A program made the position numbers and the translations under genes. The notes beneath the pieces were generated by a model. It did not search any database. It was not told the origin of the DNA and saw only the letters and a program-made list of their open reading frames with translations. From Carpediemonas membranifera BICM (taxonomy: Eukaryota > Protista > Fornicata), in contig JAHDYR010000050.1 in NCBI GenBank assembly GCA_019828565.1, positions 1-58,510 on the forward strand: a stretch of DNA of 58,510 nucleotides. Reading direction: 5' to 3'. This document shows positions 4,308 through 58,510 of the stretch, one piece after another; the first letter of the stretch is position 1, and every line of letters starts with the position of its first letter.

Positions 4308-4367
4308 CATGCTGCGTTTTCCGGTACTCTAACCGGGACTTAAAGTCCCAGAATCAAGTCCCGGAAT
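4308..4367 (+). repeat. Left TIR of element 1
   Basis: catgctgcgttttccggtactctaaccgggacttaaagtcccagaatcaagtcccggaat. Its reverse complement matches 45604-45662 with 6 mismatches and 1 gap; it carries iterated GGGACTT/AAGTCCC boxes. Confidence 0.88.
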
Positions 4368-4821
4368 CCTTGATTGATTTTGATCGATGTCGTCGGATCA
4401 TCCCCAAAGTGGGTGACAGTCTTCTACTAGCCTAGTTCTACCTCTGGAAACATTATTAGCGCATGTCGATGTCACAAAAAATATTTATGATCGTTTTCCG
4501 TATCGTCAGTGCAGGATAAGGTCGCATGACTTGGCCAAAGTCGCTCTTCAGAACTCGATCGTCTGACACATACAAACGCTAAAAGTGGTTGGCAAAGATG
4601 CATTAGACCTTGTATATGACGTGTATAGACAAAATTTCGGGTGTTGCACTGTCACCTCTGAGGGGTATCCTCTCAAAAAGTGTTGAAACTCCTACTGTAA
4701 CATCCCCTTGCTGTCCTAGCAACGGAATAGTACTTTATTTACTTCAACTTTATCCCATTCGATAAAGAAAAAGTCAAATTGTGTGAGCAATCTTCAACCT
4801 TAAAGTGCACATACAGGCATC

Positions 4822-6010
4822 ATGGAAAAGACCCAAAAACGAGAAATCCTGATTGCAATTGCAAAAGAAGTATTCTACTTTCAACGCGATTGTGCTCAAG
4901 CCATGCCTGTTGCGGTTTCAGAGGTGTGCTGGGCTATTCTGCCAGATGATATCCGAGCTCTCTACAAGAAGAAGCAAGCGATGGCTTGTTCTCTTCGTCA
5001 TGCCCTTATCCACGCTCTGGATGGACTCGCCCCCCTCGTCTTACCAGATCAACACCGAGGGTAAGGTCAAGGGTGTGTTCCTCAAGGACTTCGGCGAGAT
5101 CAACCTATCAAGGCTGCAGGACAACCTGCAGGCAGCATCAGGTACCACTAGCACTGTGGTATGGCAGCCTCCGGTTTCGCGCTACATCAGCATCCCCTTC
5201 CAGACCTATTCGAAGAAGAAGGACAAGAGGGCTCGGAAACAGTCTCAACCCGCCCCTCAGTCGGTCGTAACTGTTCGTGACAATCTGGCCAGTGAACACA
5301 GACAGCGGGAAGCAGCGCACATCGACCAAGTCGCTTCCCAATTTTCCACATGTGTGGCGCAGGCAACGGCACTTATCCAGACAGGAATGAACCGGCGCCA
5401 CGCACTCGACAACTTCACTTATCAGCAGCTACGAAACTCATTGCGCATGTGTTGTGGGGTCTGTCACGATCCGATGAATCTGCTGCTGAAGATTGAGGAC
5501 GACAACTCCCTGCAGTGCCAACAATGCGAGAGGTACTTCCATTATAGCTGTGTCAGTGGCTACTTGGAGGAGCGAATGGCATACCCGGCATCTAACAGGG
5601 CCGATAAGCAGAAGATATCCATCTGCGATGACTGTAAGGCAATCAATGGTAACGACGAGTGCTTTCATCGTACACCTCCAACCGAGACCACCCAAGCAGC
5701 GGACTGTGGTAGAAGTATTAAGGATGGACCCAGCATGCTCTGCTACTTTTGTTCCAACTGGTTCTGTCCGGATCATATCGCGGACACCGTTTTTGACACT
5801 GGAACTGACATGTTGAAGCGTCCTTCTCGTCGTGTTCCGGTGTGCGTGAATTGCTTTCCTCGCATTCAGAGAGGCCAGCGACAGTTCAACGGTGAGTATA
5901 CCAACGCTGCCCGCGCTATTACAGAGCCATTGACACTCGCGGATGACGAGGCTCGTGATGATGTCAGTATCCGCGAGGAGGTGAGTGATGAGGAGGATGA
6001 CCAAGAGTGA
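4822..6010 (+). CDS. PHD-like zinc-finger protein (ORFs 4822..5064 and 4853..6010, probably one gene with a +1 shift at the C-run near 5030)
   Basis: CGVC...CQQCERYFHYSC...CDDC is a C4HC3 pattern, followed by a second Cys-rich finger and an acidic tail. Confidence 0.75.
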
Positions 6011-6325
6011 TAAGTGGAATAAAATGAACGAATGACTGATGCGGCACATTCTGTTTACGCTATACGACGATTTTTAGAGAGCGCCAGAGAGGTGCTGCAG
6101 GGAGAGAGCTTGTGCTTGCGTATCCTGAGGGATGCGGGATGGGAGGGGCCGACGTAATTGGCCAATCCACGTTTGTGGATCACCTGGTGTCGTCCATACC
6201 GGGCGTCTCTCCGCCACAGGCTGTGTTGCTGCGCATGGAAAGCAGTGTTAACTGTGTTCTATTGCACGATAGCACGGGGTTATTGACTGATGCGGCACCT
6301 ACCTTAAATTGCTCGTCATCCACAG

Positions 6326-7341
6326 TTGTGGATGGACCGATATCGCGCTAAGCATCGCCAAGCACCTCTCAAAGGGCAATCATCCGCTCGACAAGATCAT
6401 CACCTGTTCATTTCACCATGGAACGATGAGCAGCTCCGCATCCTTGGCGATAATGCGCGAGTTCTTCAGCTGCTCGCCATGATGGTCCCTTGGATGCGGA
6501 AGATCTTGGCCTCGCCTGCATTTAACCCCGGGTGCAAGCCCAATAGCACCGAGAAGGACCTCCTCGGCAAAGAGCTCGAACAGGACGTGGATTCATCAAG
6601 AATCCTTCGTGAGATGTCCAATCGAGCGGCGTACAACAAAGCCCATGCCAAGATCATTCGTGATCTCGTTGAGTACCGGAACCGCGCAGCTCACAATGAG
6701 CTTGAGCCCGACACCCTGCCCAAGGTCCTGGAGCTGGTCGAGAGCTTGGCCCAGGCCTTCTCGGTTCCATTGCACGATAACGTCAGGGCGTTCATCGCGC
6801 TGCTTAAGTCGCCAGTGTCGCTCGTTGCGACAAGTGAACATCATGCTCTGACGAAGAAGGTCAGCATTCTTGAGGATGAGATTGAGAGGCTGCGCGTAGC
6901 GGCGGCCGTAAGACCATGCTCAGGCTGCCAGGTGTCAGGTCTCAGCCGGAGCCCACCACTTTGGAGCAGGCAACGATGACGACTTCGGACGTCGGAGACC
7001 TGGATGAGCCGAGGCCCAGGCCCGAAGACACGGGCAAGACGCGCGGTACGCTCATGTCCCGCACACTGACTGCTAGCCAGGTGGACCAGCTAGCTATGGT
7101 TAGAACGCATGACCCCCCGCTTGTCCTGTCAGGACGTTGCATCGTGTGCGGGGGCTCATGCGAGACCTCAGAGTGGGCTTGCCGTCGTACCTCAACGACG
7201 ACACCCAAAGATCCTTGCCGAACGTTGATTCGGAAGGTTAAGATTGGGAATACTCGCGACGTCTCTGTCTACCTCACAGATGAGGCATTTGAGTGGGTCA
7301 AGCGTCGCGATCCGACAGGCAAGAGAGCGAGACAGGAATAA
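6326..7341 (+). CDS. HEPN-motif protein with C-terminal Zn ribbon (frameshifted copy; intact copy at 39792..40805)
   Basis: YRNRAAHN fits the RxxxxH HEPN motif in a helical domain; C-terminal GRCIVCG...C...C. Confidence 0.6.
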
Positions 7342-7362
7342 ATGAATGTATATGTGCATGTC

Positions 7363-7739
7363 TGGGCCTCAGCGCTGTCGTTCAGGCCAATCCACGTTTG
7401 TGGATCCGTGCAGTTTATGGCTTATCGACCGGACATCTCCTGAACTGAGCGCCAGGGGGCGGAGGTGGCGTTGGCGTGGGGCGTGGAGGCGCTGGGGGCG
7501 GGGGTGGCGTTGATATTGGGCAATTACATAAAGTGCACGGTGCTTGGAATTTCATTCCAACCTCAAAAATGGCGGGAAAGCATTATTGGAAGGAACTAGT
7601 GGCAGCTATGCGGTTCTTTATACTGCAAAAGCAACCAGCTGTCGTCAAAAAGCGCGCCATCTACCATCAATAACCAACATCTGCGTTGCACTCCACTGTT
7701 CTCGGTCGTTAATGCACAAAAATCACTAAAACAACATCA
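7363..7739 (+). repeat. About 375-bp intergenic dispersed repeat, copy 1
   Basis: Near-identical copies at 10649-11021, 12510-12885 and 14326-14701, inverted copies at 39398-39770 and 41431-41803, and a partial copy at 22625-22680. Confidence 0.95.
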
Positions 7740-7778
7740 GAAAGGAACAAAAGATAGATACTATAGACGTCCGTTTAC

Positions 7779-8507
7779 CTATTCAGCCAGGCGCAGGTAC
7801 TGACGCGCCGTCTCTCGGGCAGAAGATATACCATGGAGGGATGCGTTCTGGGCAAGGCGCTTGAACGACACAACGAACAGCGGAAGTCGCTCCCACTCTC
7901 CTTGGGCCCAGTAGTGATGGTCGTACTCGAGTGATAAATATTCGTAGGGGTGAATTGTTCGAACGCACACGAAGAAGAGAAGCGGGAGCAGTTTCGTCTC
8001 ATCAGCAGCAACACGAACAAGAACGTGACCAATGTGGCACTGCACATTGGTCACGACCGGGTTGTCGTTGATGCGATGGACACCGATTGTTTCAGGGTTG
8101 GCGCTGACGCAAAACTGGGTTCCATCGATGAGGTAGTCGTAGTTACCATTTGACTGGCGCTCATGGATGACCTCACCAGCATAGACACCGACCAGAGAAC
8201 CGACGTCGATTCGGTGCGACGAGATGACCCCTTGGCCAACATCGGTGCCCATGAGGGACTTCTGTGGCTCAAGAAGGATCCCATCTGCGGTCTTAGCGAT
8301 GCCGTTCTCAAGTAGTTCTTCGCCTGCATGCTCAGAGTCCGCCTTCTTGCCACCTGCACCGAGGAACTGCTCTCTATCCTCCTTAGAGAGCTTTTTCAGA
8401 GACATCAATTTCTCGTAATCATCTAAAAGACATTGTAATGTTCTCTCTTCCTCTGATCCATCTGTAGCAACATGCGGGATCATGATAGTGTGCATTCCTG
8501 TTGTCAC
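7779..8507 (-). CDS. Stand-alone SET-like domain protein
   Basis: GQGV...IDVGSLVGVYAGEV...HRINDN...RTIHPYEYLSLEY follows the SET motif order GxG, YxG, RFINHS-like, ELxFDY-like. Confidence 0.72.
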   Translation of the reverse strand: MTTGMHTIMIPHVATDGSEEERTLQCLLDDYEKLMSLKKLSKEDREQFLGAGGKKADSEHAGEELLENGIAKTADGILLEPQKSLMGTDVGQGVISSHRIDVGSLVGVYAGEVIHERQSNGNYDYLIDGTQFCVSANPETIGVHRINDNPVVTNVQCHIGHVLVRVAADETKLLPLLFFVCVRTIHPYEYLSLEYDHHYWAQGEWERLPLFVVSFKRLAQNASLHGISSARETARQYLRLAE

Positions 8508-8663
8508 TCACAATTGCGAAACTCGCTCTCTGTTCCATAACCTGCACATCGGATTTGAACGATGACGACAGACAGCCAACAGTGGATCGCATTTGAGCAT
8601 CTTGCGGCTCTATAAACCACTATAAAGCGTGGTAAGATAGAGACCGCAAGTCAATGCATCAAC

Positions 8664-9296
8664 ATGATCGAGGATTCCTGTGTGGAACGATTTGTGATGT
8701 TCTGGCTAACTACAGAGAACGCGGCGACGATTTACAACGAGAAAACGGCTGCTCTGCAGGAGAGCTATGGAGACGGAGTTGAGGACGACAACTCCCTGCA
8801 GTGCCAACAATGCGAGAGGTACTTCCATTATAGCTGTGTCAGTGGCTACTTGGAGGAGCGAATGGCATACCCGGCATCTAACAGGGCCGATAAGCAGAAG
8901 ATATCCATCTGCGATGACTGTAAGGCAATCAATGGTAACGACGAGTGCTTTCATCGTACACCTCCAACCGAGACCACCCAAGCAGCGGACTGTGGTAGAA
9001 GTATTAAGGATGGACCCAGCATGCTCTGCTACTTTTGTTCCAACTGGTTCTGTCCGGATCATATCGCGGACACCGTTTTTGACACTGGAACTGACATGTT
9101 GAAGCGTCCTTCTCGTCGTGTTCCGGTGTGCGTGAATTGCTTTCCTCGCATTCAGAGAGGCCAGCGACAGTTCAACGGTGAGTATACCAACGCTGCCCGC
9201 GCTATTACAGAGCCATTGACACTCGCGGATGACGAGGCTCGTGATGATGTCAGTATCCGCGAGGAGGTGAGTGATGAGGAGGATGACCAAGAGTGA
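8664..9296 (+). CDS. Chimeric ORF formed at the duplication junction (family-X N-terminus fused to PHD C-terminus)
   Basis: The first about 38 aa match the 11844 gene; the rest is identical to the C-terminus of 4853..6010. Confidence 0.7.
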   Translation: MIEDSCVERFVMFWLTTENAATIYNEKTAALQESYGDGVEDDNSLQCQQCERYFHYSCVSGYLEERMAYPASNRADKQKISICDDCKAINGNDECFHRTPPTETTQAADCGRSIKDGPSMLCYFCSNWFCPDHIADTVFDTGTDMLKRPSRRVPVCVNCFPRIQRGQRQFNGEYTNAARAITEPLTLADDEARDDVSIREEVSDEEDDQE

Positions 9297-9610
9297 TAAG
9301 TGGAATAAAATGAACGAATGACTGATGCGGCACATTCTGTTTACGCTATACGACGATTTTAGAGAGCGCCAGAGAGGTGCTGCAGGGAGAGAGCTTGTGC
9401 TTGCGTATCCTGAGGGATGCGGGATGGGAGGGGCCGACGTAATTGGCCAATCCACGTTTGTGGATCACCTGGTGTCGTCCATACCGGGCGTCTCTCCGCC
9501 ACAGGCTGTGTTGCTGCGCATGGAAAGCAGTGTTAACTGTGTTCTATTGCACGATAGCACGGGGTTATTGACTGATGCGGCACCTACCTTAAATTGCTCG
9601 TCATCCACAG

Positions 9611-10627
9611 TTGTGGATGGACCGATATCGCGCTAAGCATCGCCAAGCACCTCTCAAAGGGCAATCATCCGCTCGACAAGATCATCACCTGTTCATTTCA
9701 CCATGGAACGATGAGCAGCTCCGCATCCTTGGCGATAATGCGCGAGTTCTTCAGCTGCTCGCCATGATGGTCCCTTGGATGCGGAAGATCTTGGCCTCGC
9801 CTGCATTTAACCCCGGGTGCAAGCCCAATAGCACCGAGAAGGACCTCCTCGGCAAAGAGCTCGAACAGGACGTGGATTCATCAAGAATCCTTCGTGAGAT
9901 GTCCAATCGAGCGGCGTACAACAAAGCCCATGCCAAGATCATTCGTGATCTCGTTGAGTACCGGAACCGCGCAGCTCACAATGAGCTTGAGCCCGACACC
10001 CTGCCCAAGGTCCTGGAGCTGGTCGAGAGCTTGGCCCAGGCCTTCTCGGTTCCATTGCACGATAACGTCAGGGCGTTCATCGCGCTGCTTAAGTCGCCAG
10101 TGTCGCTCGTTGCGACAAGTGAACATCATGCTCTGACGAAGAAGGTCAGCATTCTTGAGGATGAGATTGAGAGGCTGCGCGTAGCGGCGGCCGTAAGACC
10201 ATGCTCAGGCTGCCAGGTGTCAGGTCTCAGCCGGTGCCCACCACTTTGGAGCAGGCAACGATGACGACTTCGGACGTCGGAGACCTGGATGAGCCGAGGC
10301 CCAGGCCCGAAGACACGGGCAAGACGCGCGGTACGCTCATGTCCCGCACACTGACTGCTAGCCAGGTGGACCAGCTAGCTATGGCCAGAACGCATGACCC
10401 CCCGCTTGTCCTGTCAGGACGTTGCATCGTGTGCGGGGGCTCATGCGAGACCTCAGAGTGGGCTTGCCGTCGTACCCTCAACGACGACACCCAAAGATCC
10501 TTGCCGAACGTTGATTCGGAAGGTTAAGATTGGGAATACTCGCGACGTCTCTGTCTACCTCACAGATGAGGCATTTGAGTGGGTCAAGCGTCGCGATCCG
10601 ACAGGCAAGAGAGCGAGACAGGAATAA
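9611..10627 (+). CDS. HEPN-motif/Zn-ribbon protein, duplicate copy (frameshifted)
   Basis: Near-identical to 6326..7341. Confidence 0.6.
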
Positions 10628-10648
10628 ATGAATGTATATGTGCATGTC

Positions 10649-11021
10649 TGGGCCTCAGCGCTGTCGTTCAGGCCAATCCACGTTTGTGGATCCGTGCAGT
10701 TTATGGCTTATCGACCGGACATCTCCTGAACTGAGCGCCAGGGGGCGGAGGTGGCGTTGGCGTGGGGCGTGGAGGCGCTGGGGGCGGGGGTGGCGTTGAT
10801 ATTGGGCAATTACATAAAGTGCACGGTGCTTGGAATTTCATTCCAACCTCAAAATGGCGGGAAAGCATTATTGGAAGGAACTAGTGGCAGCTATGCGGTT
10901 CTTTATACTGCAAAAGCAACCAGCTGTCGTCAAAAGCGCGCCATCTACCATCAATAACCAACATCTGCGTTGCACTCCACTGTTCTCGGTCGTTAATGCA
11001 CAAAATCACTAAACAACATCA
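10649..11021 (+). repeat. About 375-bp intergenic repeat, copy 2
   Basis: Near-identical to 7363-7739. Confidence 0.95.
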
Positions 11022-11060
11022 GAAAGGAACAAAAGATAGATACTATAGACGTCCGTTTAC

Positions 11061-11789
11061 CTATTCAGCCAGGCGCAGGTACTGACGCGCCGTCTCTCGG
11101 GCAGAAGATATACCATGGAGGGATGCGTTCTGGGCAAGGCGCTTGAACGACACAACGAACAGCGGAAGTCGCTCCCACTCTCCTTGGGCCCAGTAGTGAT
11201 GGTCGTACTCGAGTGATAAATATTCGTAGGGGTGAATTGTTCGAACGCACACGAAGAAGAGAAGCGGGAGCAGTTTCGTCTCATCAGCAGCAACACGAAT
11301 AAGAACGTGACCAATGTGGCACTGCACATTGGTCACGACCGGGTTGTCGTTGATGCGATGGACACCGATTGTTTCAGGGTTGGCGCTGACGCAAAACTGG
11401 GTTCCATCGATGAGGTAGTCGTAGTTACCATTTGACTGGCGCTCATGGATGACCTCACCAGCATAGACACCGACCAGAGAACCGACGTCGATTCGGTGCG
11501 ACGAGATGACCCCTTGGCCAACATCGGTGCCCATGAGGGACTTCTGTGGCTCAAGAAGGATCCCATCTGCGGTCTTAGCGATGCCGTTCTCAAGTAGTTC
11601 TTCGCCTGCATGCTCAGAGTCCGCCTTCTTGCCACCTGCACCGAGGAACTGCTCTCTATCCTCCTTAGAGAGCTTTTTCAGAGACATCAATTTCTCGTAA
11701 TCATCTAAAAGACATTGTAATGTTCTCTCTTCCTCTGATCCATCTGTAGCAACATGCGGGATCATGATAGTGTGCATTCCTGTTGTCAC
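11061..11789 (-). CDS. SET-like domain protein, duplicate copy
   Basis: One amino-acid difference from 7779..8507. Confidence 0.72.
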   Translation of the reverse strand: MTTGMHTIMIPHVATDGSEEERTLQCLLDDYEKLMSLKKLSKEDREQFLGAGGKKADSEHAGEELLENGIAKTADGILLEPQKSLMGTDVGQGVISSHRIDVGSLVGVYAGEVIHERQSNGNYDYLIDGTQFCVSANPETIGVHRINDNPVVTNVQCHIGHVLIRVAADETKLLPLLFFVCVRTIHPYEYLSLEYDHHYWAQGEWERLPLFVVSFKRLAQNASLHGISSARETARQYLRLAE

Positions 11790-11843
11790 TCACAATTGCG
11801 AAACTCGCTCTCTGTTCCATAACCTGCACATCGGATTTGAACG

Positions 11844-12447
11844 ATGACGACAGACAGCCAACAGTGGATCGCATTTGAGCATCTTGCGGCTCTATACACC
11901 ACTATAAAGCGTGGTAAGATAGAGACCGCAAGTCAATGCATCAACATGATCGAGGATTCCTGTGTGGAACGATTTGTGATGTTCTGGCTAACTACAGAGA
12001 ACGCGGCGACGATTTTACAACGAGAAAACGGCTGCTCTGCAGGAGAGCTATGGAGACGGAGTTGTGCGGTGCTCGGGTACGGACAGCATCACGAGAACAA
12101 TATCATCTTCCTCTCGTGGTGTCGAGCATGTATCGAGCATTGAGCGAGCATCAAGCGTCATGCAGCGTCACTTGGAGTTCCTGCATTGGGGCAAGATCGC
12201 CCTTTCCTGTAGCGGCAGGACGCTAGCTGACTTTGCGACTCAGCACTTCCCCTTCCGTGTCTCTGATATTGAACGCAAGATTGTCTTCGTGATGGTCACC
12301 GTTCCCAATGAGTTCATGGTTTGGTATAAGGCGCTTGTTGACGAGAAGATCGATGAAGAAGAGTTTACCTACTACATCATTTATCGTCTTAACTCCAGCG
12401 CGAAGGATCACATGGTTGTTAATGCCCTAACCTTCAAATATGAATGA
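11844..12447 (+). CDS. Unknown protein, family X (frameshift at T-run near 12014); paralog of 30342..30950
   Basis: FRVSDIERKIVFVMVTVPNEFMVWYKALV..IDEEEF aligns with VRLSIFDRYAIYVAKKAPSLYASWVESLL..TSIEEL. Confidence 0.55.
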
Positions 12448-12509
12448 TCAGAGAGAGTGATGTGGTTAAATGGATTGAAAATGAGTCTTTTTAATGTCTC
12501 ACCACCTGT

Positions 12510-12885
12510 TTGGGCCTCAGCGCTGTCGTTCAGGCCAATCCACGTTTGTGGATCCGTGCAGTTTATGGCTTATCGACCGGACATCTCCTGAACTGAGCGC
12601 CAGGGGGCGGAGGTGGCGTTGGCGTGGGGCGTGGAGGCGCTGGGGGCGGGGGTGGCGTTGATATTGGGCAATTACATAAAGTGCACGGTGCTTGGAATTT
12701 CATTCCAACCTCAAAATGGCGGGAAAGCATTATTGGAAGGAACTAGTGGCAGCTATGCGGTTCTTTATACTGCAAAAGCAACCAGCTGTCGTCAAAAAGC
12801 GCGCCATCTACCATCAATAACCAACATCTGCGTTGCACTCCACTGTTCTCGGTCGTTAATGCACAAAAATCACTAAACAACATCA
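12510..12885 (+). repeat. About 375-bp intergenic repeat, copy 3
   Basis: Near-identical to 7363-7739. Confidence 0.95.
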
Positions 12886-13430
12886 AAAGGACTGTTCATA
12901 CGTTATTAAACATTGCTTGCTACTTCTGTTTCATCTTATTGTCGTTTACAGCTGTGTTGTCCTCAACAAATGCCAAGACAGATCAACGAGGCGTTCGCGG
13001 CTTCCCGTTGAAGACTTGCCATTGCCAGAGAGAGTGCCATGCCTGGCACGTCTCTCTTCTTGTCTGCCGCGTGAAGGAATCGACCAGGCTGGATTCATGT
13101 GCAGCTTATGCAGCAATGGACACTCTGGAGTCAGAACTGCATTTGCAGCAGCTTCTTGCTGCTATTGAGCTTACTTGTGGCCCTGTCCCATCAGAAAGAA
13201 ACAACAGACAGGCCCGAAAGATCGCCGCGGTCATTTCTGGTGAGTTTGACAGAGCATTCGACCGTTTCTTGCGCGATCTCTTCGCCGACAGCCCGTCTAT
13301 CATGAAGAGCTAGATCTCCTGGCGGAGATTCCCCAAGAGCCCATTGAAGATGTGCCTGTCGCGGTAGGAGAAACCGCCAAGCCTGCATCCAAGCTTCAGC
13401 CCAAGACCACCAAGTCCTGCGAAGAAGAAG

Positions 13431-14285
13431 GTGCAGACAAAGAAGCTGAGACAGCTGGCGCCGCGACGCGCTGGTACGCCTGCCCCGACACAACAGCAGG
13501 TCATCGTACCACTCAAGAACCTCAGCCGCCAGGAAGAGACAAGCCTTGAAACGTGGATTCGCAGCGTGCCGAAAAACTCTGCCATTACCATCGATATCTC
13601 TGGGATGGATGGTTTCAACGCCAGTGAGTCGACCCTTCACGAGCTGGAACACTCATTCCAGGAGAACAACGTCCGAGTTATTCGGGCCTGGATTGCTTAC
13701 CAGCTTTGTCTCTACGACTGTTTGTCAAGCCAGAAGATTAAGTATAACGAAAACGTGGCCCCCAGCGACGCCCTGCTCTCAGTGGCTCTTCAGCAGCAGA
13801 GGATCTTTGTCCAGGCGAACAAGCAAGGTGCACTTTCCACACGCCTTAACATAACGAAGACCCCCTTCTACAACAACGTTGTGGAGCGTCTGAAACTGAT
13901 GGGTGAGACAGAAAGCATGATGTCAAAGTTCCACAACATCATTGGTGTCATCATCATCCACTTCGCCGACTTCACTTCCTTGCTGAAGAACCGAATGATC
14001 CCGAAGGATAACGATACAGTCAGGGGCTTGAGCACCCTCATTGTTCACAGTCATCTGTGCATGGTTTACTCAACGGCGAAAGATATCCGTCCTGAGATCT
14101 ACAATGCTCTGACGACAAGCAGTACATTCCCGCCAGACCTTATGGCGTTTGCAAGAATGGCATTTGGTCTCGGACAAACCGCGGCGGTGACCCATGAGTC
14201 GCCCGAAAAGCAGAAGCATGCGGACAACACAATAGAGGATGATTCAGAGATCGAGACAAGTGGTAAGAGGGTGAGGACTGAGTAA
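13431..14285 (+). CDS. Unknown protein, family Y; paralog of 28266..29531 (true start probably upstream)
   Basis: ITKTPFY...LMG / IHFADF...MIP align with ITNPFY...GMG / VHPEHF...IIP. Basic NLS-like C-terminus (KRVR). Confidence 0.65.
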   Translation: MQTKKLRQLAPRRAGTPAPTQQQVIVPLKNLSRQEETSLETWIRSVPKNSAITIDISGMDGFNASESTLHELEHSFQENNVRVIRAWIAYQLCLYDCLSSQKIKYNENVAPSDALLSVALQQQRIFVQANKQGALSTRLNITKTPFYNNVVERLKLMGETESMMSKFHNIIGVIIIHFADFTSLLKNRMIPKDNDTVRGLSTLIVHSHLCMVYSTAKDIRPEIYNALTTSSTFPPDLMAFARMAFGLGQTAAVTHESPEKQKHADNTIEDDSEIETSGKRVRTE

Positions 14286-14325
14286 ATGGATTGCAAATGA
14301 GTCTTTTTAATGTCTCACCACCTGT

Positions 14326-16395: not shown

Positions 16396-16397
16396 TT

Positions 16398-48815: not shown

Positions 48816-48890
48816 CATACTGTCCAGGGTTCAGGAATTTCCCTTATTGGGTAGGGGAATTTCCTCGGGGGAAAGCCCGAGGAAATTCCC
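48816..48890 (+). repeat. Terminal repeat of element 3
   Basis: catactgtccagggttcaggaatttccc...ggggaatttcctcgggggaaagcccgaggaaattccc, including a 15-bp perfect stem. Confidence 0.75.
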
Positions 48891-48979
48891 TAGCATTTCG
48901 ACTCGGTAAGAAAAAAAATAAATCAACAACGAGCTGTATTCATAATCTATAAATGAGGTTGAATACATGCCTACACATG

Positions 48980-49180
48980 AGGACTACTCATGCGTAGTTT
49001 TGAGCTTTAAATCCTGCTAGAAAAAAGTAACATAGGGACAATTATTCCTTGGGAGTTCAGACTCAAAAATCGGGCTGGGGGGAGGAAATGGTCCATAAGT
49101 ACGCCTTATGGGTCGCTTCCTCCTCTCTGCCCTTTTTTATTGACTTCTGATTTGCCAGATTTGACACATGTTCGAGGTGA
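48980..49180. repeat. Subterminal block, diverged inverted homolog of about 33995-34200
   Basis: Shared strings such as ctttaaatcctgctagaaaaaagtaacatagggacaa and ggaggaaatggtccataagtacgcc. Confidence 0.88.
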
Positions 49181-49308
49181 GTCTTAGATTACTCAAAATG
49201 GCCTCCTGATTCAGCAGATAGACTCAAAATTTCACAATTCGTACTCAAAACCAATTTCAACAGACGTCTGTTGCAAAATCTGCCAAAAACGCACTTTAAA
49301 AGTCATTT

Positions 49309-50583
49309 TTGCAACAGACGTCTGTGGAAATGGTCTTTAAGCTCTCCGCTGCCGATTTGACGCAACTACACAAGACTAACTACAGTAATACGTACATTGC
49401 CGACATTAGCGGGGTCAAAACTGTCGTCAAGGTCGATAACTGTATGACACTTCGCCTGACACACGAAAAGACGATACTTCAGGCAATGAAAAGCCCATTT
49501 ATTGTTACAATCGTCGATGTGGGCTTTGTTGACAGCGATCAAGCGTTTGCCACTCGCTTTGTTGACCATATGTCGTGGCGAGACGTTCTGGCACTACCAG
49601 TACCGGATCAATGTCGCTACTTGCGGCACTTACTGTTAGCTCTCAGCCATGTGCATGAGAATGGATTCATCCACGGCGACATCAAGCCCGACAACTACCT
49701 TTTCAACCGAGAAGACGGTGGATTACTCATTGACTTCGGCTCTGCCATCAAAATAGAGGCTCCTACTGGGATTAACAGGTATATGGGACAAGACATGAGA
49801 GGGACACCTGGTTTTATCCCCCCCGAGCTTCGTGCCGACGAACTCAGTCGGAAATCGAAGCATTGTACAGTAGCTATGCGGGAACCACAGAATTTGAACC
49901 CCTTCCAGGCTTCCAGGAACACCACAACCAGAAACACCAACATGCACACAGTTGATGCGGCATACGACATCTTTTCCTGCGGCGTTATCGTCCTCATGAT
50001 GGCATTGCGACTGGATAAGTCTCCATTTCGATCTGTGAGAGTGGATGGTGGCAAGCCAAGTAACCCAGACGAGCATATTGGCGCTCTATATAACATGGCG
50101 TACTTCTACGGCCGCGAAATCACGATACACAGCAAGAAGAAGAATGCAGCCCGTGGTTTGATGATCAATCCGACTCTCTGCACGAGAGGAAGCCCTCCGA
50201 CACAGTATAGGAGCCTTTATGACCTTGCAATGGGGATGCTCAGCTATAATCCGGAGGATAGACCAACAGCTTTGATGTGCGCTGAACATCTCAACGATAT
50301 CGCCGCCCTAGCAGCAACGTTCGCATCAACACCACTGATGATCAACGACCAGGTGACAATCTCTCAGGAAACGCTCGCTGCCGCCAAACTCACCGTTGAA
50401 GCACTTCGAGAAACCCGATTTGCTGGCCGATGCATTGCATGTGGCATGCCGGTTCACGATAATCGAACAATAACTTGCAAGACACACCACCAAGATTACA
50501 GAAGCATCATGAACCCCCACACAAAGAGAAGAGGACGAGTTTGGAGGGTTCATCGTGATCTATCATTGATTATTGATATGTAA
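49309..50583 (+). CDS. Ser/Thr protein kinase (non-RD) with C-terminal Zn ribbon; paralog of 14861..16162 (likely ATG 49330)
   Basis: VVK, HGDIKPDN, DFG, GTPGFIPPE, YDIFSCG; GRCIACG...CKTH. Confidence 0.93.
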   Translation: MQQTSVEMVFKLSAADLTQLHKTNYSNTYIADISGVKTVVKVDNCMTLRLTHEKTILQAMKSPFIVTIVDVGFVDSDQAFATRFVDHMSWRDVLALPVPDQCRYLRHLLLALSHVHENGFIHGDIKPDNYLFNREDGGLLIDFGSAIKIEAPTGINRYMGQDMRGTPGFIPPELRADELSRKSKHCTVAMREPQNLNPFQASRNTTTRNTNMHTVDAAYDIFSCGVIVLMMALRLDKSPFRSVRVDGGKPSNPDEHIGALYNMAYFYGREITIHSKKKNAARGLMINPTLCTRGSPPTQYRSLYDLAMGMLSYNPEDRPTALMCAEHLNDIAALAATFASTPLMINDQVTISQETLAAAKLTVEALRETRFAGRCIACGMPVHDNRTITCKTHHQDYRSIMNPHTKRRGRVWRVHRDLSLIIDM

Positions 50584-51030
50584 CCGCCCAGTATCGAATC
50601 ACCTCACTACCATGGGATGATCGCATTCACCTTCAAAGAAAGAGATGAGGCCGCATACTCGACCAGATATAAAGGAGATATGCTGCAGCCTTGAAAAGAA
50701 AGAAAGAAAGAAAGAAATTTATGGTGCTTGGATTCTGACCCCGGACTGAGCTTGTTTCCCGTGCTGCAGCCTTGCGCTGGCTTTATAGACAATACCCAGT
50801 TGTTTACACTAAAACCGAAAAATCAGTCCAGTAGACGCTCGAATCGAACTGGAGTGGGGTGGCTGTGATACAGTGTTCGTTCCTGTAGTACCCAGGCAGA
50901 AGACCCGACCGGACGATATGGCCTGGAACTCTACCGGCAAAAAGCAGCTGGCGGCCGCTGAGGAATATGTGGAAGGCGCTTCCAGAATGATCTTTACACT
51001 ACTTTCTTTGCTTCTATCTTGTACTTACTG

Positions 51031-52710
51031 TTAATCACTCTCATCATCTTTTTGTCTACTTGTGGATGACGGAGCGCCTTCCTGTATTTGCGCTTTTCTT
51101 TTGATACCCTCTGGGAGACTGACAAGTTCCGCATGGTCGTCCTGGAGCAGAATAAAGTGGGTAATGCCATGTCTGGAACAGAACACCTGGAAATTCTCAC
51201 AACGATCAGCAGCTGAGTCGCCAGAAGGGTACAAACCCCAAAACTGGTGACCATGTGTGAACAATATCACTGTAGAATTATTACCGTTGTTGCACACCAT
51301 GATGACATTACGCATGTAGATCATGGAAAACTCTCGCACAGCATCATCGGTAAGCCAGCCCATCTTGGAAAACAGTTCTGCCTTAGCGGAATCCTCCGTC
51401 AGAGCCGTCCGCTTCACCCGGCTTTCCACCAGCTCGGCACGCAAAGCCATGGCTGCCTCAAGATCTGTTCTGTGGGTCAGGGTGGTCATATCCCGGAAAT
51501 GGCCGTCCCTAATCATGCAACAGCAGTGCGCAACACAGCTGCCATCACGGTGTGTCGAGTATTTCCTCCATGACTTCAACCCATTCACAATTTCCTCAAC
51601 GAAGGACTGTGGCTGACCGCTGGTGCCGATTGGAATCTCTTTCTTCTCAATCATATTGTTGATGTGAGACTCAATGGCCACAGATGACTCGTGTTCAGAC
51701 TTGATCAAGAGCAGAGAGCGAAAGTCGACGATCTTAGCAGTGGAATCGAAGTTCGGGTACGCAGGCCGGTAAACCTTGTTAAGCAAAGGATAACAACGCG
51801 GCGGGAGTCTTGCGTCTTCCTCCGATACGATCTTCGCTTTTGCACAACCGTCAGGTCTTGCGATAATGACTCTTCGCTTCATGTACGAGAGCTTGGACAT
51901 CCAGAACCAGAATTGCGCGATCTCATGGAGGTGATCTGGCTGAGTCATGATTCTGATGAGCCACGTGGCGTCATGGGCGGCAAGTTCGACGGCGGGTAGC
52001 TCATCTGGTGTCAAAAGCACCACACACCGTTGCATTGTGAACTTGAACTTGCCAGAATACAACTGAAAGATCGGCCGTGGGTCACGGGCGGAAGACTGGC
52101 AGGCGGCAATATACACACCCATGATTCGGGCGAACTTGCAGACATGACTCTCATAATTCTTCAGAATTGCCTCGATGAAGTCGAAGGCAGTTGTCCAGAT
52201 GGCTGGTATCGTGCGGGCATCGACCACAAACCGACCATCAGAGTCCGAGTGACCAGTGATAATGAAAAAAGTCTCATAGTCACCATACAGCTTGCCGAAT
52301 TCCTTGATTTTCGCCTCAAAATCGTCCTCGTTCTCGAACTGGGCCGTCTCGATAACCGTATACTCGCTATGCATTGCCGCAAAGATCTGACGAATGCGTT
52401 CTGCGTGCCCTCCAATGGAGACAGATTCATCAATCGAAAACTGCCTGCTATCTCCAGCAACGAACCCATAGGTTGGCTCGAACACGATGAGGACACGTGT
52501 ATTCTTCAGCGCCAGTGCAGTACGGGTGCACTTGTGACGTCGGGATGGCGAGGGAAAACCGACGTTGCGTGTTTCGCTACTGATGTCCCCACAGACACAT
52601 TCAAACAGCTTTGATCCATCCAGATATCGATTTCTCCACCCCATTGCATTGAAAAATGTCTGATCGTCGTTCATGACGCCAATGCCAAATTGAGGGTGAG
52701 AAAATGGCAT
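51031..52710 (-). CDS. Putative caspase-like (clan CD) protease fused to an OTU-like protease
   Basis: FFIITGHS and GVYIAACQ give a His-Cys dyad after hydrophobic strands; C-terminal RDGSCVAH...GWLT...DDHAEL. Confidence 0.58.
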   Translation of the reverse strand: MPFSHPQFGIGVMNDDQTFFNAMGWRNRYLDGSKLFECVCGDISSETRNVGFPSPSRRHKCTRTALALKNTRVLIVFEPTYGFVAGDSRQFSIDESVSIGGHAERIRQIFAAMHSEYTVIETAQFENEDDFEAKIKEFGKLYGDYETFFIITGHSDSDGRFVVDARTIPAIWTTAFDFIEAILKNYESHVCKFARIMGVYIAACQSSARDPRPIFQLYSGKFKFTMQRCVVLLTPDELPAVELAAHDATWLIRIMTQPDHLHEIAQFWFWMSKLSYMKRRVIIARPDGCAKAKIVSEEDARLPPRCYPLLNKVYRPAYPNFDSTAKIVDFRSLLLIKSEHESSVAIESHINNMIEKKEIPIGTSGQPQSFVEEIVNGLKSWRKYSTHRDGSCVAHCCCMIRDGHFRDMTTLTHRTDLEAAMALRAELVESRVKRTALTEDSAKAELFSKMGWLTDDAVREFSMIYMRNVIMVCNNGNNSTVILFTHGHQFWGLYPSGDSAADRCENFQVFCSRHGITHFILLQDDHAELVSLPEGIKRKAQIQEGAPSSTSRQKDDESD

Positions 52711-52771
52711 CGCACTTTAAAGCAGCTTTATGTGAGAAATGTATTGCATATAATTCTGCATTCAGAAGACG

Positions 52772-53314
52772 ATGGCTAGAACAAAGCAAACGGCTCGCCG
52801 GCCTACGCAAGGTGGAAAGGCGCCTCGCAAGCAGTTAGCAGCGATAGCTGCGCGGAGAGCGAATACTTCGTCGTACCGCACCTACAAGCCGTTGTCTCAG
52901 GCCGCGTTGGAGAATTGCACGGCAGTCCTGCAAAAGGCTGATGCTGATATCCAAGAAACTATTCTGTCGTGCATCAAGAAGACGGAGGCGCACAACTTCA
53001 AGCAGATGGTCAAGAATTCAACACGAGCTGGTTTCCGACTTGCATTCAACACTGAGTCCGAGTCTGTCCACATGAACCCATCGAGGAAGGACGAGGTGGC
53101 AGCGCGGGCAGAAGCTGCTTACCAATCAGCGCTGCATGCCTTCCGCAGCGTTGACCCTGAGACTGCTGCGACAGAAGATATGAAGACACTGCTTGACACC
53201 TTAGCGGTTGCTCTTGACGCAACGCCAGATGTGCCACATGCTCGCCTGGATCCTGAAGAACAGCGTCGGTTCCTGAAGCTGAAGGATACGTACATAAAGG
53301 TTAAAACAGTTTAA
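52772..53314 (+). CDS. Histone H3 N-terminal tail mimic fused to an unrelated helical domain
   Basis: [29 protein letters not shown] vs H3 [28 protein letters not shown]. No histone-fold motifs follow. Confidence 0.88.
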   Translation: [180 protein letters not shown]

Positions 53315-54209
53315 GGAACTCGTCCAACGTCTTCGCATTGTGCGTCATGGCCACCTTGTCCTTCTTCGTCAACCTCGATTTGGTACCCTTTCTCTTCACA
53401 GTCGTCTTCTTCTTCTTAGAAGGCTCCCAGCTCCCATTGGCGCATGCTTTTCTTAGCTTCTTCTGCTCTAATCTGTACTTCTCCTCCTCCGTCATGTCTG
53501 CTTCCTTTTTCTTTGCCTTCGCCTTCTTCTTCGACTTCATTACATCTAACTTCTTCGCCTTCTCTGCATCCTCCTGGACCACGCGAGAAATTGAGTGCTT
53601 CACGTCCTTCGGTACATCACGATTCCTCGCATGCTTAACCACGACAAAGACATTATCGTCAGTGCCGCCACCTTCAAGGATGACCTTGTCCTTTGGGATC
53701 TTGCTGGTGGCAACCAAGAAGCAGATCGGCTTCTTATCCACCTTGAATAGGGCAAACCTGCAGTTGCCAGCAGCCGAATGATGGCAAAGCTTGTTGACGC
53801 ATGCTTCATCAGGAGTCATGAGGTGCAGCTGTGACGATAGCTGAATCCGAGAAGGCTGATCGCTAAGAACACCCTTGGCAATCCCGAGCACTTCTCCCTC
53901 ATCAACATCGCCAGCCGTGACCAAACCATACATCATGTCATCGCCCTTTGACACCATGCATGTGCTGCACTTCAGAGAAATGAGCGATTGGCCGTCAAGC
54001 TCGACAATTTGGTCATCATCGAAAGGCAAGGCGTCTATCTTCATCGCGGCTTCGCCCATGTCCGCCCAATTTGCATAGACACGACGCGCAAGCTCTTCCG
54101 GAAAGCAATCGCAGCAAAAGTTGACAGTTCCACTTTCTTGCTGCATTCTACGCAGTTTATACCAGCAGTTTATACGCAGCAATGACACAGCACCAAGAGC
54201 GTGGCACAC
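53301..54209 (-). CDS. Divergent SET-like domain with Lys-rich C-terminal tail
   Basis: YGLVTAGDVDEGEVLG..KG...LCHHS..GNC...LVATSKIPKD. The terminal ELxFDY motif is absent. Confidence 0.6.
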   Translation of the reverse strand: MCHALGAVSLLRINCWYKLRRMQQESGTVNFCCDCFPEELARRVYANWADMGEAAMKIDALPFDDDQIVELDGQSLISLKCSTCMVSKGDDMMYGLVTAGDVDEGEVLGIAKGVLSDQPSRIQLSSQLHLMTPDEACVNKLCHHSAAGNCRFALFKVDKKPICFLVATSKIPKDKVILEGGGTDDNVFVVVKHARNRDVPKDVKHSISRVVQEDAEKAKKLDVMKSKKKAKAKKKEADMTEEEKYRLEQKKLRKACANGSWEPSKKKKTTVKRKGTKSRLTKKDKVAMTHNAKTLDEFLKLF

Positions 54210-54299
54210 AACCCTTCAATGACCCATGTAAGGTTGGGTGGGTCTTATGTCAGGCTGTTTCTTTTCAATCATTTCAATCATATCCTGCACAGACTTCGT

Positions 54300-55005
54300 T
54301 GATGAAGAAGTTCTGCTATGACGAAGCCGGCTTGTCGCGACGAGAACTGGGCCATAGAACTGAAATCGGCATCCGAATATCGCGGCACGCATGGGTATTT
54401 ACCCCCAGAAATGTTCAAAGTGTGTTCGTGTTCGGTCATTCCGCCGTCAACGAGCGCCATACGAGACCTCCAAGCATACGCGCATGACTGCATCGGCTCT
54501 TCCCGCCTGTTCTTCATGTCGTCACACCTGCCTCCGACATTTACTCGTGCGGTGTAGTCATTGCTCTTTTACGGTCTCCCCAAGTCCCCCTTTGCCGCGA
54601 AGGTGACTGACATGGCGCAGATCGACAACAAGAAGAAGAATAAGATGCTGAAGCTTGGTAGCTTGCTGAACTGGTGCCACTTCTATGGTGGGCAGTTGCA
54701 GTTGTCACGTAAGACACTCGAACCGCTCAGAGATTGTCTCAACTTCGTGAACGTGAACTCTGCACTACCGATTCGCGGCACAACGCCACCCACTTGCCTC
54801 GGAATGTACGACCTGGCAATGCAGATGCTCCACTTCGACCCAACGAAGCGTCCCACTGCTGCCGAATGTCTTGACAAGCTCAAGGTCATCATGCGCGTGC
54901 ATGAATGCGTCGCCAAGCCGAGTCCGCTTCTGTTAGATGACACTGAACAGGTCTTACTCTCTGTAGATCAGCGAAAGAGAATGGTCGACTGCTGCCAACT
55001 GGGGG
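54300..55005 (+). pseudogene. Kinase pseudogene closely related to 14861..16162
   Basis: ASEYRGTHGYLPPE and LGSLLNWC...RPTAAECLDKLK are near-identical; 5'-truncated and frameshifted. Confidence 0.88.
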
Positions 55006-56397
55006 TCCTGGAGGAAAAGTTTAGAGATGCGATTCGAAAGGGTCGTAGCATTGAACTCGAAACCATGAGTCCTAAGAACACCGGCGCATGCCCAACACTC
55101 ACCCCGGTGGGGCCTGGCCGTGGTTTGAACATATACCGACACATAACTGGGTAAATACGTAAATGTTGTGCGAAAATTGCGTCTTGTTCTGCACAGAGCG
55201 ATGACGAAACTAAAAACGGAACAAGAAGAGGCCTGAAGATTTAACTGCCCGGCGGTGCAGGTTCGTCAAGTGGCCGGAGATGCCGCTTCCAGTAAGGTGT
55301 ATGCCGTACAGCTCGCCGTATCCATCTCCGTGCCCGTCTCCATCCCCCACTCCGCCTTCAACGCCAGCCCCCCGCCACGCCTGTTGTAAGTCCGCCTCCA
55401 TCTCCTGTCCGCAGTTCACCACCGAGTCTCGAAATCGAATCACCTCACTACCATGATTCCCCGCAATACCATGATGTATGTGATGACCATTAAACGATCT
55501 CCTTCTATACAATGACTTCTGAAGCCGTCCGACCAACGGCACAGAACGGTTTATAGCATGCATATGATCCATTCTGGTGCCTTTATCCTCTATAACCAAC
55601 ATCAGTCCATCAAAAATGAATCTTGCAACAGAATACTCATCCACACGCATCGAGAACGAAAAAGAAGCATATAACCAACATCAACAACCTAATAGAAGGC
55701 TGCATGCAAGCGTAGAGCTCTCCTAGTCGATTCTTCAATTTATCAAGCATCAATCTCCACGTCAGGATGAAACTGTGCGCCCAAAAGCTCAGAGATGCCG
55801 TTATAGATGATATAACGACGTCTCTGAGCTTTTCAGCGATGTCAGTTTCTGGCCACGTCCAAGTTCGGCTCTGCGAAAATAACAGTGCATTGCACTATAA
55901 GTCATACATTTGGAATACAGCAATGCACTGTTATTTTCGCCAAAACCACGCTGACCTACCATTGTCCATGGGCTTGACGGGGGTGATCTTCTCGGCTTGG
56001 ATTTGGCTGAAACTTGGTATATGTGTAGTATTTGATATGTTAGGACGGATCCAAGATTTTTTTACATATCGTTCGAGTCTATTTACCGAGATATACGTAA
56101 AGCAAAATTAGGGTTGAGTCTATTCTGGCTGAAAAGCGGTATGGTGGGTTCTCTGACTGTCTGAACACGGCTCCAGAAGTTTTACGTGATGAATTGGCAT
56201 ATTTATATTGCTTTGCGTAAACAGAAAATTTTGACAGTACCTACAATCAACTACCTGCATATACATGCTATAAACATGCTTAAAATGCCTTCAGTCGTAC
56301 GTGCTATATACTAAAGCTCTTCCTGCATCTTATTTCGAAAGAACAAAATATTCACTCTGAAAATAACACTGCATTGCTGTGAAATTTTTGGAAAAAG

Positions 56398-58013
56398 ATG
56401 CTAGATATCACTATTCTACGCAGCTGGATTCGTGAGCATCATGAGAAGACCGTTAGGATTGCTTCTGCTGCACCTGGTCAAGAGCGTAAGGCTATTCGAG
56501 CAGATAAGAGTATGTTCGAGAGATGGTTCGCACTCCGGACGAATAAGAGCCGCTTGGAGCACCTCAAGGAGCACAAAGTGATAACGAAGACAGCCCTGAG
56601 ATGCGCGCTGGTCGATAACATCGTCATTGACGAGATTCGTGATGTGTTTGGTCTCGCTGGCCGAGTTTCACTAATGGATCTCATCAACAAGGCTTCCCTT
56701 CCCGAGCTCATGGCCATTAGTGACGACCTTGCCCGGCCCGAGCTGTCTAAGGTTCCTGCAGGCTTGTTTATGGAGGATGATCAGGTTGAAATCGTGCGGA
56801 AGCAGTTTTTGACCACTACACCGGATCAGCGATCACCTTTGAGGATAACCGCGAGGCTGTCATGCCGTCACATCGTGGCTCTATTCATCTAGAAGGAACA
56901 GGCCGTCTCTTTCTTCCAGATCAAGTCAACCTGATCCTTCGCGCTCTCTTCGTCGCCCCTGAGGGCACTGTCGAGGCCCGCCGCGTGCATTCCCCTACGA
57001 GGACATTCTTTCTGGTTGCAAGAATGATCCGGGAAGCGATGTGACATCAGCCCAGCTTGAGCGGTTGCGTCGAGATGTTGCCAAGGCAGCCGCCGAAGCT
57101 ATTCAGGCAAGGAATGACCGCGAGGAAGCCATACACTCGCTTGAACTCGTTACTGCATCCTATGCGCAAGATACAGGGCATGCATATGTGACACCACCCG
57201 CCAGCGACGCCGTGGAATTTTCCGACACTGACGAGGACGAGTCCGATGGCCACGCTGAACCGGCCGCCATGCAGGGTGACGGCGTTCCTTTGCCCCAGAC
57301 TGATCAAGACGTCGAAGTAGAGTCCGATGTGGACGACACAGACACCGTTGGTCTCCAGACGGTTTACGATGTTGATGCAGAGGCCGATCATGACGTCCGC
57401 GAGCCAGTGTCCCTGCTTAATCACAGCTTAGCACAGCTAGACGACACCATTGCAGGCCTTGATGATGTACCCGAGTCTGTGCGCTTGTTGGAGCAGTACG
57501 AGCCCCTTGATGAAACGGCTTGCTGAGGAGAGGGAGGCGAGGGAGGCGCTTGAACAGGCTAACAGAGATTCTGAGGAGTCCCAGAAGAGACTAGAAGCTG
57601 AGTTAGGTCAGCAGAAGGGCGAGGATCAGGCGATCCATCAGTTTACTCAAGCAGAGTTGGCACGCGCGAGTGAGGCTGGGCTTGAAGCACTCGCCGATGA
57701 ACTCGAAGACAACTGGGCGGAGCTTATCAGGCGCGCCGAGGAGGCAACAATCGAGCTTGACCGCTACGTTGCTCTCGCTGCCTTGATGGAACTGTTCCAG
57801 AGGAACAATGTGGCTGGAGCTTTGTGGACTCGGATCAATAGCACCATGATGAGGTACGGGGGCCAGAAGTTCATAACGGTCCCACCCCTAGACCTCGGTC
57901 TTACGCCTGAGATGAAGGCTATCATCGCACAGCACTCTCGAGAGAAGAAGACAAAAGCTCGTGTAACACAGGGAGAGAAGCTGGAGTTTCCCCTGGAAGG
58001 GCGTTCATGCTAG
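56398..58013 (+). CDS. Run of overlapping unknown ORFs (56398..56892, 56862..57044, 57041..57526, 57450..58013), acidic and coiled-coil
   Basis: Contiguous same-strand ORFs; no domain recognised. Confidence 0.4.
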
Positions 58014-58082
58014 TGGAGCAGTTGAAGTAAATGGGCACGGCGACAGGGGCGGAACAAGCAACCGCGAAATAGAGATATCAGG

Positions 58083-58460
58083 TCATCCCTGACATTGTAT
58101 GGCGAGAACTGTTCTCAGTCTCCGCTTTGGGAGCTCTAAGATCAGTCTGAGATGAGTTACAGATGTCCACACGGTATTCGTCAAACTGAGCACTTCTCCA
58201 AATGAAATGTACTCGTGCTGCTTTAATGAGTCTTTGTTGTAGTCATAAACATAAGCAGCACCAATTGCCTTCATTTTGCCTGTTTCTGCCATTATTGATC
58301 TGCATATTGATTCCAAGCGACTATCTAAACAAAAGCGGCTTTGAATTTCTTCAACAATGCCAATTCCGCGCATAATGTCCGATGAAATGCTGACCACTTG
58401 TGATGCAGCTCCCTCAGGCGTTTCTAGATGTGGTTTCATTGGTTTCATTCTCAGTGACAC
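58083..58460 (-). CDS. Small unknown protein, paralog of 17142..17348
   Basis: Shared IQS..DSRL..I..SI..ET.K..AIG pattern. Confidence 0.55.
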   Translation of the reverse strand: MSLRMKPMKPHLETPEGAASQVVSISSDIMRGIGIVEEIQSRFCLDSRLESICRSIMAETGKMKAIGAAYVYDYNKDSLKQHEYISFGEVLSLTNTVWTSVTHLRLILELPKRRLRTVLAIQCQG

Positions 58461-58510
58461 CCTTTACATAATTCATTTTACGTTATAAACATATCGAACG
58501 AAATGAAGCA

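Follow-up and report, generated by a model that had tools for sequence, protein, structure and literature searches.

We analysed positions 1 to 58,510 of contig JAHDYR010000050.1 from the genome assembly of Carpediemonas membranifera BICM (GCA_019828565.1). This 58,510-bp stretch, hereafter the window, holds three nested DNA transposons of the DDE-type, cut-and-paste kind, which we term E1, E2, and E3. Very probably they represent one previously undescribed family of cut-and-paste DNA transposons in C. membranifera that is also present in a second eukaryote genome assembly, GCA_002919055.1. E1 (4308–45662, + strand; 41,355 bp), delimited by its terminal inverted repeats (TIRs) and by copies elsewhere in the genome, is apparently autonomous. 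E2 (16398–34355, + strand; 17,958 bp) is a non-autonomous derivative nested in E1 and flanked by a 2-bp duplication, TT. E3 (48816–58510, − strand) is partial, spanning at least 9,695 bp and continuing past the end of the window. Other loci, designated by L-numbers and including parts of GCA_019828565.1, were retrieved through look-ups of element-encoded proteins.

All five ends visible in the window (4308, 45662, 16398, 34355, and 48816) are extended TIRs of 17–73 nt, each opening with CATRCTG. Across the family the termini are imperfect TIRs that start with 5′-CATRC(T/A)G and finish with ...C(A/T)GYATG-3′; between the two ends of E1, 35 of the first 40 nt match, and the E2 TIRs are 73 nt long and nearly perfect. 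Behind each TIR stand lineage-specific boxes of 9–11 nt (9–10 nt at the five window ends) in direct and inverted orientation. The E1 left end (4308–4370, + strand) and right end (45600–45662, − strand) both read CATGCTG followed by CCGGGACTT-type boxes. When the whole window was searched, CCGGGACTT boxes were found only at the E1 ends (4333, 4356, 45607, 45619, and 45629), CTAGATTATC boxes only at the E2 ends (16414, 16435, 34309, and 34330), and GGAATTTCC boxes only at the E3 end (48834, 48856, and 48881), compared with a chance expectation of about 0.1–0.4 matches. A subterminal motif, TTTTTCTTGCAA, is common to the right ends of E1 (45575) and E2. An earlier note, made from the letters of this DNA, had placed the same five ends, described direct and inverted boxes behind them, and derived units of 41.4, 18.0, and more than 9.7 kb; all of this held, with each box set restricted to its matching ends in the window. 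The same note had defined the family by CATRCTG. Every one of the five ends does open with this heptamer, but the bare heptamer is not enriched in the window (24 observed vs. 18.5 expected, with 11 of 100 shuffles reaching 24), and 8 of its 24 matches come from a 40-bp minisatellite inside E2. The end signal is therefore carried by the extended TIRs and not by the heptamer. A CAGTATG at window positions 18–24 was set aside as a chance match, not an element end. Two further end types, each present in two loci (CATACTGTTAGAATGGCC at L015 15112 and L014 3228; CATGCTGTCTACCCCGG at L006 6778 and L015 618), raise the number of distinct end lineages in C. membranifera to at least eight.

Empty sites in paralogous copies, together with 2-bp duplications, show that the elements are mobile and fix their exact boundaries. 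E1 occurs in at least six copies with 99.2–99.9% identity and six different left flanks among the loci retrieved from GCA_019828565.1. The point at which E2 is inserted is spanned by five other E1 copies, and E2 is absent from all five of them. TT is duplicated, the sequence being CTCTTGAATC where the site is empty and CTCTT[E2]TTGAATC where it is filled. A fourth element, E4 (L003 6194–9930; 3.7 kb, CATACTG ends, no open reading frame (ORF)), lies inside another E1 copy and is accompanied by a duplicated AG; neither the window at 13535 nor L005 contains it. The search for empty sites that the earlier note had proposed thus yielded precise ones for both E2 and E4, in near-identical copies. A further relative is inserted in the E1 copy of L015 at the equivalent of window position 14852. 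The E1 copy in L003/L002 has matching 2-bp flanks (TG), and two other complete elements each carry the transposase gene described below: L006 8363–16930 (8.6 kb, duplication TC) and, in GCA_002919055.1, L008 2171–13799 (11.6 kb, duplication GC), which splits a Ty3/gypsy pol gene. Overall, a matching 2-bp target-site duplication accompanies five of the seven complete elements (TT, AG, TG, TC, and GC), for which a binomial estimate gives a chance of ∼2e-5. The duplicated dinucleotides show no target-sequence preference. For an element starting at L007 7225 the right end was not found within that locus; the same TIR at L013 1119 is part of another copy. Because the copies are near-identical, the 854-aa gene of E1 is intact, and the empty sites are exact, sequence comparison suggests recent activity in this culturable, free-living protist.

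The putative transposase is an intact 854-aa protein encoded by E1 (42080–44641, + strand) and 100% identical to J8273_6817, a hypothetical protein of C. membranifera, which identifies the window as nuclear DNA of this metamonad. Members of its family measure 750–910 aa. A full HMMER scan against 1.84 billion representatives returned 17 relatives (as cluster representatives). Carpediemonas contributes at least 12 annotated genes, spread over at least nine contigs, and all relatives traced outside Carpediemonas lie in one unannotated assembly, GCA_002919055.1, where they form several lineages; no nucleotide similarity was found between the GCA_002919055.1 and Carpediemonas loci. In an alignment of 14 sequences, W337, D339, K349, R351, D422, P517, P518, M520, H521, S523, R558, T559, C562, and E564 are invariant and fall in the motifs WxDGW, (G/A)DHKA, PPxMHxSH, and RTTGCNEQ. 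We modeled two members with AlphaFold, the E1 protein and an 851-aa protein from GCA_002919055.1, which are 28% identical to each other (pLDDT 74 and 76.5; pTM 0.70 and 0.71). The 854-aa model puts D339 close to where a long strand ends, D422 right after another strand, and E564 at the start of a helix, as is usual for a DDE triad carried by an RNase-H-like core. A Foldseek comparison of the 854-aa model with the PDB gave RAG1 chains as matches 1–43, followed by amphioxus BbRAGL and Helicoverpa HzTransib. For both models the top 44–47 matches were all RAG1, BbRAGL, or HzTransib, in the same ranking, with best E-values of 5e-9 and 3e-8 and target-normalised TM-scores of up to 0.53; the next fold, that of P element transposase, followed far behind (E about 6e-3). 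The family is thus predicted to have a RAG1/Transib-type architecture, with a D-D-E triad on a predicted RNase-H-like core. This relationship is visible at the fold level only, since neither the profile built on the whole family nor that built on its catalytic core found RAG1 or Transib among PDB sequences at E ≤ 10. The only matches that the family profiles did obtain, to a dihydrouridine synthase domain, were rejected as chance.

Several points weigh against this interpretation. At the sequence level the family resembles neither RAG1 nor Transib nor any of the Pfam transposase models, and the link to RAG1 comes from predicted structures that were built on shallow alignments (15–20 sequences) and have moderate TM-scores. 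Correspondence of D339/D422/E564 to RAG1 D600/D708/E962 is likewise something we infer from the models. Within the 14-sequence alignment the C(2)C motif is absent and H(3–4)H is represented only by H521-x2-H524, in 11 of 14 members. A matching duplication is missing from two of the three complete E1 copies, whose flanks are GT/TC in the window and AA/TA in L005/L014. Finally, the role of the 854-aa protein as a transposase is a predicted one.

Judged by published descriptions, the family fits the broad CMCT (CACTA/Mirage/Chapaev/Transib) clade, probably as a new lineage set apart from those already named. The clade is marked by 5′-CA..TG-3′ termini, target-site duplications of 2–5 bp, and common C(2)C and H(3–4)H motifs, and within it the transposases of ESTA have been linked to RAG1 via HHpred (PMC12730594). 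Both the 5′-CA..TG-3′ termini and a 2-bp duplication are found here; all ends read CAT...ATG, with T at position 3 in every end observed. To our knowledge, RAG1 and Transib are the only members of the clade with solved structures, so that the Foldseek result supports membership in CMCT broadly and not in Transib specifically.

It is possible, though we regard it as unlikely, that the elements belong to an already named non-Transib lineage of the clade (Mirage, Plavaka, ESTA, Lanisha, or Chapaev) and look new through insensitive Pfam models. Mirage makes 2-bp duplications. The CMCT-wide termini and duplications are compatible with this assignment, as are those of PlavakaA (2-bp duplications) and PlavakaB (5′-CATCA termini, duplications of 2–3 bp) (PMC12730594). 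An accessory gene of epigenetic type (TET/JBP) is carried by several lineages of CMCT and KDZ. Against the assignment, none of 15 transposase-family members matched any Pfam family at E ≤ 0.1, and hence none matched an EnSpm/CACTA or Plavaka model. Pfam contains transposase models for both. The 17 relatives found in the full scan and the missing C(2)C motif also argue for a lineage separate from those named.

We consider it rather improbable that the family instead belongs to the Transib superfamily proper as a highly diverged branch, either within Transib/RAG1 or as its sister. RAG1, BbRAGL, and HzTransib are its best structural matches, with nothing else close, and its heptamer-like terminus starts with CA and finishes with TG; Transib and RAG-like elements are, moreover, known from some protists and bacteria (PMC9435367). 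Any CMCT member, however, would match RAG1 and Transib first, these being the only CMCT structures in the PDB, and the defining features of Transib (a 5-bp duplication, a CAC-initial heptamer plus an A-rich nonamer, the SxxCxxC motif, and single-gene elements of 3–4 kb; PMC1131882) are all absent here.

The predicted status of the 854-aa protein also leaves a slight chance that it is cargo or a domesticated gene and that another enzyme moves the elements. E2 and E4 (L003) lack an intact transposase gene, and none is present in the visible part of E3, whose far end lies beyond the window. Non-autonomous relatives are nevertheless expected of cut-and-paste families. No other large gene is shared by all complete elements >8 kb of the two genomes; this one lies 0.4–1.7 kb from an end in most of them; and its D-D-E triad is invariant. 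No alternative recombinase-type gene was found in the elements examined: the E1, E2, E3, L006, L007, and L008 elements contain no tyrosine or serine recombinase, HUH, Cas1, or polB gene, and Pfam searches, which covered most of the element ORFs with 150 aa or more, revealed no recombinase or integrase beyond a nested Ty3/gypsy fragment. An assembly artefact or plain segmental duplication in place of transposition, which the short, repeat-rich window and the mismatched flanks of its E1 might suggest, is scarcely credible given that independent GCA_019828565.1 contigs and a second genome show the same ends with different flanks, 2-bp duplications, and exact empty sites.

If the family is a cut-and-paste lineage of this kind, its transposase would bind the subterminal boxes, which vary together with the transposase from lineage to lineage. 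Cleavage would fall at the CA...TG termini and would probably follow the nick-and-hairpin route used by RAG, Transib, and hAT enzymes. The excised ends would then be joined to target DNA across a 2-bp stagger. Elements would readily enter one another and other repeats, giving the nesting seen in the window. More speculatively, the accessory set (SET and PHD/FYVE genes, with kinases and an H3-tail mimic in some elements) may act on chromatin, in targeting or in anti-silencing.

The earlier note had called these elements giant. The 41.4-kb span of E1 is real, but the term overstates the case because 18 kb of that span is the nested E2 and another 3.3 kb a tandem duplication (5493–8781 = 8779–12064). 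The duplication is missing from the E1 copies in L003, L005, and L015, and the copy in L013 is structurally different. Subtracting E2 and the duplication gives a canonical E1 length of ∼20.1 kb, and the other complete elements measure 3.7, 8.6, and 11.6 kb. E1 also contains an internal inverted duplication of ∼2 kb (5799–7746 vs. 41331–39392), inside which lies an ORF of 335–337 aa (39792–40805, − strand) with weak HEPN-like matches; all of these were sub-threshold, and a HEPN identity was rejected. In addition, E1 carries a 433-aa protein kinase gene (14861–16162, − strand; Pkinase 5e-24).

At its left flank, the window copy of E1 abuts an array of a 278-bp satellite (649–4307) whose final, variant unit is interrupted at its position 47. 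The right flank (45663–46899) consists of 29 nt (45663–45691), which repeat the left boundary of the array itself (cf. 622–648), followed by the same satellite (45692–46899). An attempt to read the E1 duplication off the satellite failed: the two flanks do not form one interrupted target, because the left one is a variant satellite unit at position 47 and the right one a copy of the left boundary of the array. The mismatch could reflect exchange between the 20-kb near-identical copies, or an assembly mis-join. The left-boundary sequence occurs twice in the window (626–648 and 45669–45691), which implies duplication or rearrangement of the array locus. On either side of E1, nearly all full satellite units are 100% identical. 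The satellite matches nothing in Rfam and, since 278 cannot be divided by 3, is non-coding; Rfam and tRNA scans of the window aimed at the satellite or at a target preference returned nothing. Window positions 1–629 are homologous to L013 3333–5216, just upstream of a reverse-transcriptase gene there, and are probably derived from a retroelement. Elsewhere, an E1 copy in L004 is interrupted by a 6.9-kb insertion of another kind (12500–19378) with a 3-bp ATT duplication, possibly a long terminal repeat retrotransposon. In the same locus, ...CAGTATG and then one C (7095–7108) directly precede the left end of the E1 copy, suggesting that it was inserted right beside the end of another family member.

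E2 interrupts a gene of E1 (34356–35528, − strand), the last 22 codons of which lie just left of 16397; the same gene is intact (402–413 aa) in E1 copies elsewhere in the genome. The transposase gene of E2 is reduced to a remnant (18929–19684, + strand) that retains the first 237 aa only, the remainder being gone. An intact 851-aa gene in another E2-family copy (L007 2302–4854) has an N-terminus 100% identical to these 237 aa. Where the transposase C-terminus is expected, E2 holds a Ty3/gypsy chromovirus pol fragment (19986–21644, − strand) with RNase H, integrase, and chromodomain, and this fragment and minisatellites have enlarged the element. A G+C-rich 40-bp minisatellite occupies 25767–26186, 26874–27253, and, inverted, 29879–30058, an inverted-block arrangement.

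The visible end of E3 (48964–49180) is homologous to the right subterminal region of E2 (34218–33998), and E3 is therefore inverted relative to E2. Its target is a gene for a CRESS-DNA-virus-like Rep (48099–48815, + strand) with an HUH endonuclease (Gemini_AL1) and a superfamily 3 (SF3) helicase domain. Walker A and Walker B are both present, and the ORF ceases just past Walker B, at codon 239, which is exactly where E3 starts. The gene cuts that had been read at the E2 and E3 heptamers are thus both exact, the first shown by intact copies and the second by Rep similarity that stops at codon 239. The Rep gene itself is an endogenous CRESS-DNA-virus-like gene in a metamonad genome. Within E3 lie a protein kinase gene (49309–50583, + strand), a second kinase fragment (54561–55154), and a 180-aa ORF (52772–53314, + strand) whose first 40 residues copy the N-terminal tail of histone H3. 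These residues match H3 chains in the PDB (E about 1e-6 to 1e-5) with the substitutions K9→R, S10→P, K23→I, and K27→R; the ORF contains no histone fold, and no second copy was found in the other retrieved loci. Tail-to-tail with it lies a weakly SET-like ORF (53301–54209, − strand; SET E = 0.13).

Genes of the SET and PHD/FYVE types recur across elements of the two genomes. E2 carries a SET-domain gene (27668–28327, − strand; Pfam SET 25.2 bits, cut-off 22.4). The SET-related gene of E1 (7779–8507, and again at 11061–11789 in the duplicated segment, − strand) is 32% identical to it (E = 4e-20) and also matches SET genes in L007 (13930–14658) and L008 (10823–11632). The PHD/FYVE accessory gene of E2 (17618–18854, − strand), which is split into two ORFs here, encodes a C-terminal tandem of a PHD-like and a FYVE-like finger. 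The tandem-finger gene is also found at L007 8640–9953 and 1114–2034 and at L008 11805–13073, the last of which matches the FYVE domain of Hrs (E = 5e-4). E1 has a PHD/FYVE-like zinc-finger ORF (8664–9296, + strand) that falls below the Pfam thresholds, and a related ORF at 4853–6010. Because they are common to both genomes, the SET and zinc-finger genes have the look of a core module and not of random cargo; protein kinases occur in E1 and E3. We considered the PHD/FYVE protein as a RAG2-like partner and rejected this, as its roughly 200 N-terminal residues plus fingers show no Kelch or propeller signature. A homology search with the conserved PHD/FYVE protein returned nothing. For ORFs 36835–38451 and 51031–52710, an OTU protease motif seen by eye had no Pfam support, and that identity is not claimed. 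In GCA_002919055.1, one contig carries both a transposase-family gene and, 7.6 kb upstream of it, an RCC1-like gene (L009 782–2371). The latter belongs to a family of >30 paralogs with 35–69% identity within that genome, which may have been amplified together with the elements.

RAG1, which assembles vertebrate antigen-receptor genes, descends from Transib-type transposases, and the deep history of its fold is known mostly from animals and few other hosts. The family described here would add a lineage in Metamonada that sequence searches, including Pfam, overlook entirely. Its natural variants (a 2-bp stagger, a lost CxxC, and boxes and transposases matched by lineage) bear on the question of how RAG-like enzymes fix the length of the stagger and recognise their ends. 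The SET and PHD/FYVE genes that recur, together with the H3-tail mimic, hint at a testable link between transposon and chromatin. Transposons are not mentioned in the C. membranifera genome paper (PMC8516963). A bolder reading, which we hold to be doubtful, is that of a deep, sequence-invisible sister lineage of RAG1/Transib in metamonads with a chromatin toolkit of its own: a SET methyltransferase, a PHD-plus-FYVE reader, and, in at least one element, an H3-tail decoy with K9 and K27 replaced by R. If true, histone marks would be tied to transposition or to evasion of silencing, an independent parallel to the reading of H3K4me3 by the PHD of RAG2 or to the TET/JBP genes of fungal transposons.

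The elements share with Transib, ProtoRAG, and RAG1 a predicted whole-protein fold with a D-D-E triad on an RNase-H-like core, heptamer-like CA...TG termini, and TIR-bounded cut-and-paste movement. They differ from Transib and RAG1 in having no detectable sequence similarity to either. Their duplication is 2 bp where that of Transib is 5 bp, and their ends read CAT where Transib has an invariant CAC. In place of a nonamer or a bipartite TIR of the 12/23 type they have repeated lineage-specific boxes. The transposase lacks a CxxC zinc motif, and the D422–E564 spacing is 142 aa, with no conserved Cys pair between, vs. 206–253 aa in Transib/RAG1. Elements of 8.6–20 kb with 4–9 genes contrast with the 3–4 kb and one gene of Transib, and no RAG2-like Kelch protein was recognised. 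Among the CMCT lineages (EnSpm/CACTA, Mirage, Chapaev, Transib, Plavaka, ESTA, as well as Lanisha; Kojima, 2025), the termini and a duplication within the 2–5 bp range bring the elements especially close to Plavaka, and the recovery of RAG1 by structure-aware comparison recalls ESTA. Subterminal repeats and large multi-gene elements with a chromatin or epigenetic gene are also held in common with the clade. The new family departs from those lineages in lacking C(2)C and any Pfam transposase match, in its metamonad host, and in its accessory genes, which are SET and PHD/FYVE instead of TET/JBP. The proposal of the earlier note that this is a DDE-driven, CMC/Transib-like family of nesting, multi-gene elements is borne out by the termini, the duplications, the empty sites, and the RAG1-like predicted fold. 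That its author recognised no described family agrees with the absence of a Pfam family, with only 17 relatives, and with the missing Transib features.

Fungal Starships, to which that note had likened the elements, are 27–700 kb in size and are moved by a DUF3435 tyrosine recombinase. The analogy holds in that both are large mobile elements that carry several genes without a role in transposition and that nest. It fails in that the elements described here, at 4–20 kb, have a DDE-type mover and no tyrosine recombinase, and in that their payload is largely conserved between elements, with SET and PHD/FYVE genes retained as a shared set rather than as free cargo.

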